This document shows, one piece after another, positions 52,080 to 61,195 of a stretch of 64,000 nt of DNA. Source of the DNA: Salpingoeca rosetta (Eukaryota > Protista > Choanoflagellata); contig JAWQFM010000011.1 of NCBI GenBank assembly GCA_033442325.1, positions 1,757,327 to 1,821,326 of the forward strand, written 5' to 3'. Position numbers and translations under genes: made by a program. Position 1 is the first letter of the stretch; the number at the start of each line of letters is the position of its first letter. The notes beneath the pieces were generated by a model that did no database searches, was not told the origin of the DNA, and worked only from the letters and a program-made list of their open reading frames with translations.

Positions 52080-52719
52080 GCAGCCCTGGCAGCAGAACAT
52101 GCGCTCATGATGCGCAACAGCGCAGGCCTTCCTCAATACACATACGACTTGCACGGTTTGTGTGTGACAGCCGCTGTCAGAGAAGTGAGGGTGCTCATCG
52201 CTGAAGCCAACGGTGAGTCTCGTTTGTGTGTGTTTGGCGGGTGTGTGCGTGTGCGTGCGTGTGTACGTGCGTGCGTGTGTGTGCGTGTGTGTGTGTGTGT
52301 GCGTGTGCATGTGTGTGTGTGCGTGAGTATTTCGGACACTCGTACCAACGTTCCCTTGGTATTTACGCGTTCCACTCCGCTTGTCGCACACGCTCACCTC
52401 TGTTCCATGCTTCATGCATGCGTTCCAGCCCGACGGCGCACAGGCGTGAAAGCGCCCTGCTCCTACTGTTTTGTGACGGGATCGGGACAGTACGGCAACG
52501 ACGTAAGCGTGCGTGCTGCTGGAACATGGTGGTATCTGCATTCGTGCATTTAAACCATTGATGCGTCCTCACTTGCTGTGTGCTGTGTGCAACACGTGTG
52601 TTCGCTGTCTGTAGTCGAGGATCAAGGCCGTGCTCAAGAACTACTGTACGGGATCCGGCCTCCGATACGAGGACGTGGACGGCGCAACCATCAAGATCAT
52701 CGCACGCCCCTACCGCTGA
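52080..52719 (+). CDS. Small Smr-domain endonuclease-like protein (resembles the N4BP2/Cue2/NONU-1 C-terminal module). Exons 52080-52212, 52444-52502, 52615-52719; 5' end unresolved, possibly from ~51826
   Basis: Spliced translation AALAAEHALMMRNSAGLPQYTYDLHGLCVTAAVREVRVLIAEANG|VKAPCSYCFVTGSGQYGND|SRIKAVLKNYCTGSGLRYEDVDGATIKIIARPYR*. It has DLHG, TGxG and RIK motifs in Smr spacing. Both GT-AG introns are phase-compatible. Confidence 0.82.
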
Positions 52720-53105
52720 GATACATGCTTGATTGTTGGTGCGTGTGTGTGCGTGCGCGCGCGTGTGTGTATGTGTGCGTTCTTTGCTTGCTGCTGTGGA
52801 TGCTGTTCTGTGTTTGTGTTTGCAGTCCCTCGTCCTGAGTACGTTAATTGAAGTCATGCGAAGTTTTATGTGCTGTAATGATGTGATGTGACATGGCATC
52901 AAGTAAACGTTCACTTTGAACAAAACAACGCATGAAACGGAAGGCACAGAGTAACGTGACAGCAAGATTGGGATCATTGACAACAAACAGCCATGATAAC
53001 ACACACTCACAAAGCAACACACTCACAAAGCAACACACACACATGCAACACGCAAAGCAATACTGTTCTTCCACCCCCCTCCCACACACACACTCACACA
53101 CACTA

Positions 53106-54452
53106 TCAGTCTGACAAGCATTCTGGGACAAAAGTGATGAGGGTGAAGAGTGCTGGTGCGAGGGCCTCGGCAAGCAAAAGGAGGCGGTTCTGGGCCCAGG
53201 ATGTGTAGTGGACCCAAGGGCCGATGATGAAGCCGCCAACGAGCCAAACCCCAAACAGAATACCACCAATCACGACCAGGATGGCGCCCGCGATGTACAT
53301 GGCGAGGCGGACCAGGTTGATGACGCCGTCGACGCTTTCGATGTCGGTCTCGTCTTCGTCACAGGAGTTGGCCAGTTTCAACAGAAGACGCCCGCCAAGG
53401 AGCATGGGTAGGCCAATGGGGATACCGGAGAGGCTGTACTTGTGGTAGCAGACGAGGTCGCGAACAGAGATGCCTGGTGGTTTGCCCAGGTTGATGCAGT
53501 AGTCGTTGAAGTCGGCGTTGGTGAGCGGAAACAGGACCAGGGCCTGCTGGCTGGCGATGACGAGGAACACCACGCTGTACAGCAGCTTGACCATGAAGCC
53601 TTTCAACCAGTTGCACCAGCCCCCCTGCTCCTCCTCCTCAAAGTCCTCATCCCGGGAGTTGTTGAAGTCATCGACGGAAATGTCCCGTTTCAGCGCGGCC
53701 TTGAGCGAGGGCAACATCACCAAGGTTTTCAGCTTGAGGCGCTCCAGTTCCATCTCCAGCAGGAGCACAAACATCTCCAGCAGGACGAACCCCATCAGGC
53801 CGAGGACCAGGCTGATGGTGGCCACCGTGCCTGGCGACAGCTTTGCTCCGATCCGGATGCCCAAGCTGCACTCGCTGGGGCCGACCGGCTCCAGTGTGCT
53901 CGTCGTGCCATTGGTCAAGATAAAGTCGCTGCAGCCAACCTCGCGCAGGAAATCGGGGCTGAGGCTTGAGCTAAACGCCGGACCGGGGAACACCATTTCG
54001 CCCTCCGCCGTCCACGACGGCGTGTACTCGTTGTCGTTGGTGGTCCAGGCGTGAAGTCGAGCACAGAGAACCACAAACTCAAACAGGAAGAAGATGAGGA
54101 AATGCACAATGGGCGCAACGAAGCGCACGCGACGCGCCGAGCGCGGGCGATGCAAGCAGCACTTCAGGATGAACCATGCCATGAAGCTGAGCACGAGGTT
54201 AGCGCCGACGATGCCGTACAAGATGAGGGCAGGCAGGTCCAGCACGTCGCTGAAGTACCACGGGGTGTCCAGGCTGCCTGGAATCGGCGTTGGCGCCGGC
54301 GTCTGCGTGGTGAAGGGGCCCGTCGTCCATGTCGAGGTCGGGGAGGAGGTCAACATGCTGGTGCTCGTCATGTTTGTTGTTGCACTGGTGGTGACATTGG
54401 TCCCGTTGAAGGTCGGGAACATGGTCGTGTTGGCCATAACCGTGGTGTTCAT
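53106..54452 (-). CDS. Intronless orphan multi-pass membrane protein (448 aa, ~7 TM) with a Thr-rich N-glycosylated N-terminus
   Basis: Uninterrupted GC3-rich ORF from ATG 54452. N-terminal sequons NTT, NTT, NGT, NVT, NMT with no signal peptide. About seven hydrophobic segments, two loops each with a Cys pair, and two acidic loops. Confidence 0.8.
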   Translation of the reverse strand: MNTTVMANTTMFPTFNGTNVTTSATTNMTSTSMLTSSPTSTWTTGPFTTQTPAPTPIPGSLDTPWYFSDVLDLPALILYGIVGANLVLSFMAWFILKCCLHRPRSARRVRFVAPIVHFLIFFLFEFVVLCARLHAWTTNDNEYTPSWTAEGEMVFPGPAFSSSLSPDFLREVGCSDFILTNGTTSTLEPVGPSECSLGIRIGAKLSPGTVATISLVLGLMGFVLLEMFVLLLEMELERLKLKTLVMLPSLKAALKRDISVDDFNNSRDEDFEEEEQGGWCNWLKGFMVKLLYSVVFLVIASQQALVLFPLTNADFNDYCINLGKPPGISVRDLVCYHKYSLSGIPIGLPMLLGGRLLLKLANSCDEDETDIESVDGVINLVRLAMYIAGAILVVIGGILFGVWLVGGFIIGPWVHYTSWAQNRLLLLAEALAPALFTLITFVPECLSD

Positions 54453-55548
54453 GGTTGTGTGTGTGTGTGTGTCTGTGTGTGTGTGTTTGTTGTACTTGTG
54501 TTGTACTGGTTCTGCTCTGTGTGAGTCGCTCTGTGTGAGTCGCAGCTCTGTGCAGCGTGCAGGCTGATGGTGTTTTGAGGTCGTGTGCGACTGTGGGAAA
54601 ATGGTCTGGAAAGAAGAAGCAGAGGAGCGTGGAAAGATTTGGCTGCTTGACAAGGGGAGCTGCCTGGGCTGGGCTGCGTTGGGTCGGACGCTATGACGTC
54701 GATCGATACGCTGGCCTGCTTGTCGATGGCAAGGGTGCTCGAGAAGGAAACGAGGGGAGGACTGGTGAACGGAGAAGAGAATGAGAGAAAGAAAGCACAA
54801 ACGTCACACCCGAGCTGTGCCAGTGCGTGTGGTCTTTGGTTTTTCTCTTTGGGAATCACTGCGTCGGAGACGGAGGAGTGGTCTAGTGGTGTCGCTGTAG
54901 GACTGTGTAGACGTGTGCTTTCTCCTCTTGCACCTGGAGGACACAACACACAGAACACACGCCAACGTCCAGCATGTCCAAAGACTGAGGGAGAAGCCTT
55001 TCGTGCAAACTTCGAGGGGATGTCCTTCCTCCTCTTGGTTCCTGTGCCTGCCGCTAGCCTGCTTGTGGCGCTGAAGCTCCAACGCGCGAAAGGCGAGGCG
55101 AAAGTCGGTCGACCACGCACTTTCCCAGCCAGCGCGCCAAGAAGGACCCGTTCTGGAAGTGGCGCGTCTCAGTCGCCACCCAAAGGTTAGAAGGTTTGTT
55201 GTGTGTCTTTGTTTGCGGTGTCGAAGCGAAACGCTGAAAAGCGTCTGGGTGCGTTTTCTAGGCTTCTCGCTGCTGCGTTGACCAACTGACTTGGGCCCGT
55301 TCCATTGGGTTGCGGTGGAGTGCAATTGGGAGAAATTGGGGCGTGGCCTCACGAAAGACAGCAAGAAGAAGCAAAGCTGCGCAGCAGCGCAGGGTTCATT
55401 TCTCAGCTGTTGCGCTTGTTGTCAGTGTTCTCCTCTCCTCTCCTCCCAGCCCCCCCCCCCCCTCCAAAGCAGCGCCACCGCAAGCTTGTGCGTTTCTCCG
55501 CACATCAGCCTTCAACTTCAGTTCTTCTGTTACAACAACAGAGCCACG

Positions 55549-55936
55549 ATGGCCTCCGAGCACCGCCTGACGGACGGCGTGTCTGTGGAGGCGATCAAGG
55601 CCTTCTTCGCAGACCTGAAGCGCGAGTTCCCCGACACATACACTGAGATGACCACGGAGGATGCCTGCAAGCAACTGGTTGTGCCACGCACACGCCAGGA
55701 CAACTGCGCCTACGTCGAGCAGCTGCGCAAGCAGTCGCCAGAGCACGTGAACAAGGCCACCGTGTTTGTGTCACACGCATGGCGGTACAAGATTGCAGAC
55801 GTGCTCAACGTCTTGCTGGAGTTTGCGGATGAGCAAGCAAGGAAGGACGCCGCCCAGCCCGTGTTCTTCTGGTTTGACCTCTTCATGAACAACCAAAACG
55901 CCAACGTCACGGCCAACCTCCCACAAGAGTGGTGCG

Positions 55937-55986
<50 letters not shown>

Positions 55987-56044
55987 CTCTTGCGCTCTTC
56001 AACAACCACTGCCACACGCACACAGACACACGCACACTGTTCCC

Positions 56045-56088
<44 letters not shown>

Positions 56089-58187
56089 CTCTTGCGCTCT
56101 TCAACAACCACTGCCACACGCACACAGACACACGCACACTGTTCCCTCACAAGAACGACAACCCCTCCCCTAATCCTCCCCGTCTTCCTTTTTCCCCCAC
56201 CCTTTCCCCCTCCCCTTTTCCTTTCTCAACACCCAGGTGGAGTACCACGTTCAAGCAGTCGATTGCCAACATTGGCCATGTGCTGCTGGTGCTCATGCCG
56301 TGGCGGGACCCTGTTCCCTTGACACGCGCGTGGTGTTTGTGGGAGATCTTCTGTGGCATCAGTAACGAGGCCACAGAGGTCAGCATCCGCTTGCCCAAAA
56401 GCGAGGAGTTAGAACTGGTCCTAGCCATCGCGGATGACTATGAAGCCGTCACAGACACGCTGGTGCGCGTGCAGGCACAAAGAGCCGACGCCTTCAACCC
56501 ACACGACAAACACATGATCTTCACGGCGATCGAGTCGTGGGCGGGTGGCTTCAGCGCAGTCAACCAGGCCGTGAAGGACAAGCTGCGCGCGTGGTGCCTG
56601 CAAAAGGCGGTGGGTGCCGTCGAAGCCATGCGGGCACGAGGCGAGGACAGCACTGACGCCTTCGCGGGGCTGTGTGGCCAGGTTGGGACGGTGCTCAGCC
56701 AGTTTGGCGAGCACAACAAGGCCATTGCCTACTACGAGACAGCGCTGGCAATTCGGCTGCGCACTGAAGGGGAGAAAGGAAGAAACGCGGCAGCATTGTA
56801 CGGCAACCTCGGCAACGCCTACGGCGACAAGGGCGACTTCGACAAGGCGATTGAGCTGTGTAAGAAGGCCCTCGCCATCAAGGTGGAGACGCTGGGGGAG
56901 AAGCACTCGAGCACAGCTGTGACATACAACAACCTCGGCAACGCCTACAGGAACAAGGGCGAGTACGACAAGGCGATTGAGTTTTATGAGAAGGACCTCG
57001 CCATCACGGTGGAAGTGCTGGGTGAGAAGCACCCGAGCACAGCGAGCACGTACGGCAACCTCGGCGCCGCCTACCACAGCAAGGGCGACCACGACAGGGC
57101 CATCCACTACTACGAGAAGGCCCTCGCCATACAGGTGGAGACGTTGGGTGAGAAGCACCCGACCACAGCGAGCACCTACAACAACCTCGGCGCCGCCTAC
57201 AAGAACAAGGGCGACTACGACAGAGCGATTGAGTGTTATGAGAAGGCCCTCGCCATCAAGGTGGAGACGCTGGGCGAGAAGCACCCGAGCACAGCACAGA
57301 CGTACAACAACCTCGGCATCGCCTACAAGAACAAGGGCGAGTACGACAGAGCGATTGCGTTTTACGAGAAGGACCTCACCATCACAGTGGAGACGTTGGG
57401 CGAGAAGCACCCAGGGACGGCCACGTCGTACTTCAACATTGGCCTGCTGCACGCCAAGCGCGGGGACAAGGAGCAGGCCTGCGCCTACATCCAACATGCA
57501 CTCGACGTTTTTGCGACCACGCTCGGGCCACATCACCCAAACACCCGCAAGGCCAAGCAAAACCTGCAGCGCATTCGCGGTGGTGCTGTGACCAGGCAGC
57601 ACACATCCACGCAACACGTGTCAGAGTCTCAACTTCAGCAGCAAAACGTGCTTGCTCATCGCAACCTTCTTCTTCGGTTCATCTCGTCTGCTGTTGTGTA
57701 CCAGGCGTTTGCTCCACAACGCAACTTGCTCATGCGGTTTCTCGGTGCAGTTGCACAGGTTCACGCTGAGGCAAGACGCCCAGCAAACACGGGCAGTGAC
57801 GGTGAAGACAAGAAGACAGAGACTGGGCACGATTGTCCTCGTGGCTGCTCTGCACCAGCAAGAGCGTTGTACAAGGACGCTTGCAAGTGCCCTGGTGAGC
57901 CACTGATCGGCTGGTTGCGGAAGCGAGGGCGGCTAAGGGCCGCCTTTCGCACTCGCTGGTGCGCACTCATCGACGACCGCCTGACGTACAGCAAGGGTCC
58001 TTCCCTGGCAGAACGTGGGCGCATCCCCCTTTCCAGCGTGCTGTCAGCTGAGCTTGTCCATGGTGGCGAGGAGTTACACGTTGCTGTTTCTGGTCGCACC
58101 TTCGTCTTCCGCCTGCACGCGCGCTCTGACACCTCGCTGGCAGACTGGTGCACCGCCATCAACAGCCGGATCAACGCCACCACTTGA
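55549..58187 (+). CDS. HET/TIR-like domain + 42-aa TPR array + C-terminal PH domain. Exons 55549-55931, 56237-58187
   Basis: Motifs [19 protein letters not shown] and [10 protein letters not shown]. Kinesin-light-chain-type TPRs ([38 protein letters not shown]). PH domain GWLRKRG...FRTRWCAL...RGRIPL...RTFVF...WCTAI. One phase-2 GT-AG intron. Confidence 0.9.
55985..56147. repeat. Tandem duplication (~102-bp period) in the TPR-gene intron
   Basis: The 61-bp block AACTCTTGCGCTCTTC...CACTGTTCCCT occurs at 55985-56045 and 56087-56147, each copy preceded by (GT)n. Confidence 0.9.
56787..57416 (+). repeat. Coding tandem array of five 126-bp TPR units with high internal DNA identity
   Basis: Units start at 56787, 56913, 57039, 57165 and 57291, sharing CAACCTCGGC...GCCTAC...AAGGGCGA...GGTGGA...GAGAAGCAC. 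Divergent capping repeats lie on both sides. Confidence 0.95.

Positions 58188-59319: not shown

Positions 59320-61195
<1,876 letters not shown>

Follow-up and report, generated by a model that had tools for sequence, protein, structure and literature searches.

TIR and HET domains are central effectors of cell death and immunity in bacteria, plants, animals and fungi. The plant TNP/XTNX proteins (TIR-NBARC-TPR) combine a TIR effector and tetratricopeptide repeats (TPRs) with a central NB-ARC domain. An N-terminal effector joined directly to TPRs, without a STAND NTPase, is found in the bacterial NADase-TPR proteins, namely BcTpr with its 'core Tpr architecture' and the TIR-TPR protein of PDB 9m0n/9umd. 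BcTpr, which acts against phage, has a NADase domain at its N-terminus and, C-terminal to it, TPRs that modulate the NADase products (bioRxiv 10.1101/2023.05.26.542521), while the 'tetratricopeptide repeat protein' of PDB 9m0n, 824 aa long, has its TIR domain at the N-terminus; together they establish that NTPase-free effector-TPR proteins exist and can be NADases. Here we describe a gene of comparable layout from the choanoflagellate Salpingoeca rosetta, which lies on the plus strand of a 64,000-nucleotide stretch of contig 11 (JAWQFM010000011.1, positions 1757327-1821326; hereafter the window). Its spliced product is identical to the 777-aa database protein P0001, publicly named 'mbre TPR repeat protein [Salpingoeca rosetta]', and consists of an N-terminal domain of about 262 aa, followed by a TPR array and then a PH domain. 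P0001 shares with the plant proteins the pairing of a TIR-type effector with TPRs but lacks their NB-ARC domain. With the bacterial proteins it shares the direct joining of effector and repeats; those, however, are prokaryotic, encoded in operons with a TIR partner gene and devoid of a PH domain, and the likeness seen here is one of architecture.

We assign a probability of about one half to the reading that this is a three-part cytosolic protein acting in sensor-effector signalling or cell death, in which the N-terminal domain would be a glutamate-dependent glycosidase of NAD+ or a related nucleotide. This domain would be silent as a monomer and would become active once the TPR array, as the sensor, binds a ligand or partner and thereby gathers several copies; TPR-driven clustering is proposed because catalytic TIR domains have to associate with one another. 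Through its PH domain, the protein would be located at a membrane that bears phosphoinositides, and the trigger of signalling or cell death would be non-self or stress. The labels 'HET', 'NLR-like' and 'immune', which had been attached to the gene in a preliminary description of this DNA made from the sequence alone, are not established. The features of the gene, in coordinates of the window and residues of P0001, are as follows.

55549-58187, plus strand: gene of two exons with a 777-aa product
55549-55931, plus strand: exon 1, starting with the ATG at 55549 and coding for residues 1-127 (the translation equals P0001 over these) and two bases of W128; it holds the N-terminal extension, strand A (FVSHAW) and strand B with its loop (WFDLFMNNQ)
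55765-55782, plus strand: FVSHAW, the end of strand A; S75 and W78 are invariant, H76 and A77 conserved in at least 90%; it aligns with (S/T)(Y/H)xW of the S. rosetta TIR_2 domains
55870-55896, plus strand: WFDLFMNNQ, strand B and the start of a BB-like loop; W108, F109, D110, F112, N115 and Q116 are conserved in at least 90%, and WFD aligns with WFD/WMD of TIR_2
55932-56236, plus strand: phase 2 intron, GTGCGT...CAG (GT..AG), with an RNA depth of about zero in the bins inside it
56237-58187, plus strand: exon 2, residues 128-777 by translation, with the stop codon TGA at 58185-58187
56325-56345, plus strand: RAWCLWE, the start of helix C; R158, C161 and E164 are invariant, and E164 (56343-56345) is the candidate catalytic glutamate
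56391-56450, plus strand: variable patch in helix D, residues 180-199 (dN 0.18, dS 0.82)
56664-57545, plus strand: seven TPR units of 42 aa, residues 271-564, of the TPR_12/TPR_10, kinesin light chain (KLC)/NPHP3 type
57909-58172, plus strand: C-terminal PH domain, residues 686-773 (PF00169, 33.1 bits against a cut-off of 25.1, E 8e-8)

Four lines of evidence, namely the fold of a predicted model, sub-threshold family matches, profile-profile comparison and the position of a glutamate, place the N-terminal domain in the TIR superfamily. The AlphaFold2 model of the domain (pLDDT 89.4, pTM 0.88, from a 16-sequence alignment) displays a flavodoxin-like alpha/beta fold with a parallel sheet (strands A-E), in which strands at residues 72-75, 106-108, 142-146 and 175-179 alternate with helices. 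Its ten best PDB matches in a Foldseek search are all TIR domains, headed by RPP1 (E 0.023, probability 0.85); overall, the structural matches have weak to moderate scores and comprise TIR domains, among them those of MyD88, IL-18Rbeta, TRAM, TRIF and MAL, and nucleoside 2-deoxyribosyltransferases. At the sequence level, Pfam returned no relevant match at E<=10 for each exon, the spliced domain or five distant homologues, and a profile search of PDB sequences gave only chance-level matches (TerB, ResE). One-by-one Pfam scans of 80 diverse members of the family nevertheless recovered sub-threshold TIR_2 matches in 17 of them, with a best E of 0.0023, while other families matched at most three members each. 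Four of these TIR_2 matches that were inspected share one register, with domain residues from about 60 to 133-153 lying on HMM positions 1 to 63-77; the best inspected member scores 17.7 bits, below the gathering cut-off of 28 for Pfam TIR/TIR_2 (PF01582/PF13676).

Profile-profile comparison with hhalign matched the 80-member alignment to six canonical TIR_2 domains taken from the S. rosetta genome itself with a probability of 82% (E 1e-5, score 41.4), the column-shuffled controls for this set scoring 11.7 +/- 2.3, with a maximum of 21. Against a broader set of 19 TIR sequences the probability was 25% and the score 29.8, in the same register (shuffled controls 11.0 +/- 2.4); the highest score of any shuffled control across both sets was 22. 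These alignments pair SHAW with (S/T)(Y/H)xW, WFD with WFD/WMD, and C161...E164 with the C..E of TIR_2. The invariant glutamate of TIR_2 aligns in turn with that of the AbTir motif 'WTNYEL', which we take to be the catalytic E208, and with the corresponding glutamate of Cat1; by this chain of alignments, E164 occupies the position of the TIR catalytic glutamate. Both a TIR-like fold and a glutamate at the catalytic position had been anticipated in the preliminary description, and the Foldseek search with the confident model and the alignments bear out the two in turn. Other searches added little: a homodimer prediction of the domain scored 0.00, which is evidence neither way; PADLOC yielded only weak matches, to PDC-S66 (a candidate single-gene defence system) in 7 of the 80 members, with a best E of 0.0015, and to ThsB in one of the 80; and an ESM Atlas named-cluster feature search was uninformative (best score 0.77).

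When set beside the catalytic TIR domains (SARM1, plant TIR-NLR and TIR-only proteins, AbTir, ThsB and Cat1), the P0001 domain displays the same fold class and order of secondary-structure elements, and common to both are a (S/T)(Y/H)xW-like strand A, an x-F/W-D strand B and a glutamate early in helix C. It is the longer by about 100 aa and has C-terminal helices as well as an N-terminal extension, conserved and about 60 aa long; in addition, it falls below every Pfam TIR threshold and possesses the family-specific, invariant or near-invariant residues Q116, R158, C161 and D218.

Across the 80 diverse homologues, which are 28-54% identical, S75, W78, P149, P153, R158, C161, E164, D218 and I222 are invariant, and H76, A77, W108, D110, N115, Q116, W160 and others are conserved in at least 90%; hence, the motifs are not there by chance. 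None of the 38 annotated S. rosetta paralogues lacks RAWCLWE, and of a further 144 fetched members of the family 142 have R.WC..E, so that the conservation of the glutamate across paralogues, on which the preliminary description had staked its proposal, holds. The domain is under purifying selection among the 21 closest genomic copies, with a ratio of nonsynonymous to synonymous divergence (dN/dS) of 0.13 over residues 128-261 and of 0.08 over the core that includes E164. The sole strongly diversified stretch of the domain among close paralogues is the helix-D patch, where dN is 0.18 as against 0.016-0.026 elsewhere. As its synonymous divergence is also high (dS 0.82 versus 0.19-0.35 in the flanks), the patch suggests old or converted sequence, arising by gene conversion or mosaic ancestry, rather than simple positive selection. 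The patch is a probable interface, as it lies in a region that forms interfaces in TIR domains.

The TPR array that follows is scored by the TPR_NPHP3 model at 175 bits, and its units combine a conserved scaffold with variability that falls mainly at a few positions, in a small sample of 35 units. It is separated from the PH domain by a linker of about 120 aa. The N-terminal domain ends at about residue 262 and the first TPR starts at residue 271, and the gap of about 8 residues therefore leaves no room for an NTPase. Consistent with this, exon 2 has no match to NACHT, NB-ARC or AAA domains among the best 25 of 51 Pfam matches listed, P0001 contains no Walker A pattern, and a domain scan of six long relatives likewise recovered only TPRs and no NTPase. 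The pattern 'GH(L/F)AYGKS', which fits a Walker A expression in seven paralogues, is read as a chance match, no NTPase family being recorded for those proteins. Thus, most of what the preliminary description had said of the architecture stands: the three motifs occur in order ahead of the TPRs, in a single reading frame interrupted by the intron; Walker A, NACHT and NB-ARC elements are missing from the Pfam results and the pattern search; and an effector-like domain is joined directly to the repeats. It had overlooked the C-terminal PH domain and the intron that splits the N-terminal domain, and it made no mention of the location near chromosome ends, of the earlier report on HET homologues in choanoflagellates or of the bacterial NADase-TPR proteins. 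Its term 'NLR-like' is only an analogy, because P0001 lacks the P-loop NTPase (NACHT or NB-ARC) that defines NLR/STAND proteins and occupies the middle of them, after the effector and before the repeats.

As had also been surmised, such genes are publicly annotated only by their repeats, paralogues of P0001 bearing names such as 'kinesin light chain' or 'TPR repeat protein'. KLC indeed has TPRs of the type seen here; its own N-terminus, however, is a heptad-repeat coiled coil that binds the kinesin heavy chain and precedes six TPRs, whereas that of P0001 is an alpha/beta TIR-like domain.

HET domains are marked by three blocks, an S-aromatic-x-W element (LSYxW-like), a W-x-D...(C)INQ element (WIDxxCINQ-like) and an R-x-W-x-x-x-E element (RxWxxQE-like). 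The present family has blocks that resemble these, SHAW, WFDxxxNNQ (CCINQ in P0047) and RAWCLWE, all of them conserved. Fungal HET proteins (HET-E/D/R, TOL, het-B Bh) resemble P0001 in further respects: the domain is of similar size (about 240-260 aa in S. rosetta), is N-terminal and ahead of repeat or recognition domains, appears to carry three blocks of motifs, the last of them an R-x-W-x-x-x-E-like element whose glutamate is conserved, and belongs to large families of variable copy number. They differ in that the partners in P0001 are KLC-type TPRs and a PH domain, without NACHT. The HET domain is given as about 220-240 aa, and its own biochemical activity as still undetermined (PMC12881547); it is remotely related to TIR (PMC4986451; PMC9153377), a relationship established by Dyrka et al. 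2014 (PMC4986451). According to the same study, homologues of HET occur in stramenopiles, haptophytes, choanoflagellates and green algae; its alignment includes one S. rosetta protein (PMC4986451). The taxonomic range of our family, which takes in oomycetes, haptophytes, chlorophytes and diatoms, is the same as that of these homologues. In single-member scans, the Pfam HET model (PF06985) matched no member at E<=10 among the top 25 of 35 families over the 80 members; a six-frame genome search for HET likewise found nothing but is uninformative, because the positive-control genomes were silent too. With no match to the Pfam model among these results, the designation HET draws on the likeness of the motifs and on Dyrka et al. 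2014, and membership in HET is a plausible lead; of the composite term 'HET/TIR-like' in the preliminary description, the TIR fold and the glutamate stand, while the HET model lends it no match in the results shown.

The NIR/DUF4062 proteins (TEP1, NWD1/2, NPHP3, TTC41) are comparable in that a TIR-like, NADase-type effector precedes the repeats, and NPHP3 has the same type of TPR as P0001, but they are mostly NLR-like proteins with an NTPase, which P0001 lacks. NIR is prevalent in choanoflagellates (bioRxiv 10.64898/2026.09.04.749371). Our hhalign comparison with the S. rosetta DUF4062 domains remained at background (probability 0.4%, score 15.6), which serves as a negative control for the TIR_2 result and excludes membership in NIR; furthermore, none of the listed DUF4062 places in the S. 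rosetta genome overlaps with a listed copy of the TIR-like/TPR family.

The family is large. A full HMMER search of 1.84 billion representatives recovered 11,120 clusters with a cut-off of E<=1e-3, of which 2,582 remain at E<=1e-30; the clusters are drawn at 50% identity, and the larger count is a lower bound for the family. Most relatives in a cluster look-up are metagenome or transcriptome proteins. Structural neighbours in the ESM Atlas are eukaryotic, and present the domain alone, with TPR_10/12, or with DUF285, methyltransferase or HNOB modules, such fusion to varied modules being expected of a modular effector. A pattern scan of 185,579 prokaryotic species genomes recovered a single locus, L069, in a 'Verrucomicrobiaceae MAG' (metagenome-assembled genome). 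We reject it as a bacterial homologue, since its sparse open reading frames and an adjoining gene for a ZNFX1-like helicase indicate that it is probably a misbinned eukaryotic contig. The family appears to be all eukaryotic. At this locus (7767-16431), an intronless TIR-like/TPR gene coding for 836 aa stands beside one for the ZNFX1-like helicase of 1,864 aa, which has an RZ-type zinc finger.

The S. rosetta genome contains at least 66 six-frame matches to the domain, all of them open, which answers the genome-wide count of paralogues proposed in the preliminary description. The copies at least 87% identical to the P0001 gene are concentrated near contig ends, 16 of 19 lying within 80 kb of one (binomial P 2.5e-9), and all 16 of these are transcribed toward the end (binomial P 1.5e-5); the P0001 gene itself lies on a contig of 1.87 Mb, at a distance of 52 kb from the end. 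The older clades (75-85% and 59-64% identity) are mostly internal. TTAGGG arrays occur at several contig ends. These observations suggest that the youngest clade lies near chromosome ends and constitutes a rapidly turning-over repertoire. The duplicated block shared among contig ends is 8 kb or more and reaches well past the gene on both sides. Upstream of the P0001 gene and divergent from it is a gene at 52585-54824 (open reading frame 53106-54800, minus strand) for a multi-pass membrane protein whose N-terminus is rich in Thr/Ser and which matches nothing in Pfam; this gene has been duplicated together with its neighbour, with an identity of 95-96%, at the ends of contigs C17, C29, C36 and C34, and for this reason we regard it as part of the same near-end block.

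Canonical TIR_2 domains are found at no fewer than 52 loci in the genome. One multi-copy family of these (motif ...RGNRGLV...CDNVLLEWMAMLEL) clusters within tens of kb of contig ends, with copies at C13:1706318, C23:1193998, C36:42521, C30:19274, C26:20811, C14:1676842, C29:887248, C4:76058 and others. Some of the TIR_2 copies adjoin copies of the TIR-like/TPR family, the two being about 2.2 kb apart on C23. There may accordingly be islands of TIR-type genes near chromosome ends.

Several other readings of these data have to be weighed against that of a Glu-dependent NAD+ or nucleotide glycosidase governed by a TPR sensor. The domain could be a TIR-fold enzyme with a substrate other than NAD+, either a nucleoside or nucleotide N-glycosidase or transferase, like the related 2-deoxyribosyltransferases and CMP-hydrolases, or an enzyme acting on nucleic acids like some plant TIRs. 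We consider this unlikely, given that the sequence signal leads to TIR_2 and not to deoxyribosyltransferase families, and that TIR and HET effectors are typically fused to repeat arrays. The domain could, alternatively, be a non-catalytic TIR-like adaptor engaged in homotypic or heterotypic assembly, in the manner of MyD88 and the TLR TIR domains, with the TPRs and PH domain as a scaffold. The adaptor TIRs among the structural matches are in its favour, as are the many canonical TIR_2 loci, which provide possible partners and in part lie near copies of the family, and the location of the variable helix-D patch in a potential interface region. However, S75, H76, D110, Q116, R158, C161 and E164, located where strands end and within helix C, vary little or not at all even among very distant eukaryotes; such constancy of polar residues is the pattern of an active site and not of an interface, and the low dN/dS over the core also speaks against an adaptor, a reading that we accordingly hold to be quite improbable.

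A further reading takes the protein for an ordinary housekeeping adaptor in trafficking or the cytoskeleton, built on KLC-like TPRs and a PH domain and expanded by segmental duplication near chromosome ends. The KLC/NPHP3 type of the TPRs and the public names agree with it, and copy number could be a by-product, the whole block of at least 8 kb having been duplicated among contig ends. Yet the heptad-repeat N-terminus of KLC is here replaced by a TIR-like domain, all 66 detected copies are open with the 21 closest ones that were analysed under purifying selection, and in many protists the domain turns up again joined to unrelated modules; we therefore find this reading very improbable.

The link between HET and TIR, the choanoflagellate homologues of HET and the existence of NTPase-free effector-TPR proteins in bacteria were already known. 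What is new is a very large, eukaryote-wide domain family of TIR type that lacks a Pfam model, the TIR-like/TPR/PH architecture, and the S. rosetta expansion with its youngest clade near chromosome ends. In its broadest and rather doubtful form, the proposal would be that the family is a eukaryote-wide HET/TIR-type nucleotide-cleaving effector not modelled by Pfam, and that in S. rosetta it forms a repertoire of NTPase-free TPR receptors located largely near chromosome ends. The organisms closest to animals among those alive today would then possess a diversifying receptor-effector system for innate immunity or allorecognition, one that links at the level of mechanism HET-dependent cell death in fungi, NADase signalling by TIR domains and the NADase-TPR defence of bacteria. 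The family offers a handle on the state of TIR-based immunity before the origin of animals and on the activity of HET, and S. rosetta is genetically tractable. Should the domain turn out to cleave NAD+ in a Glu-dependent manner, 'TPR repeat proteins' of protists would have to be re-annotated as sensor-effectors in their thousands, and effector-repeat receptors in eukaryotes would be able to function without a STAND NTPase, as they do in bacteria.

The two-exon structure of the gene agrees with its homologues, as the exon join recreates the sequence EWWSTTF, which is conserved in all of them, the intronless one included; the latter, L069, has one open frame that matches query residues 9-261 and spans the join. 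Three RNA-seq runs from 2026 contain 13-43 reads each at an identity of at least 98%, and in all of them the first mate maps to the minus strand, as expected of sense transcripts in stranded libraries of the usual kind. Many reads have loose ends and derive from paralogues, and no splice-junction read is among those listed for the three runs; given these and the small number of reads, the transcription and the splice are weakly supported by the reads, and transcription of this exact copy is plausible. Downstream of the gene, a 107-bp inverted repeat (59804-59910 / 60632-60738) was considered as a transposon and rejected, as it consists only of (AC)n facing (GT)n and recurs across the genome; beyond it, a run of N (X in the translations) marks an assembly gap located between about 60860 and 61644. 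The intron contains a perfect tandem duplication of 102 bp (two copies, 55944-56147), each unit of which begins with a (TG)n tract of about 20 repeats; as the two copies are 100% identical, the duplication is very recent.

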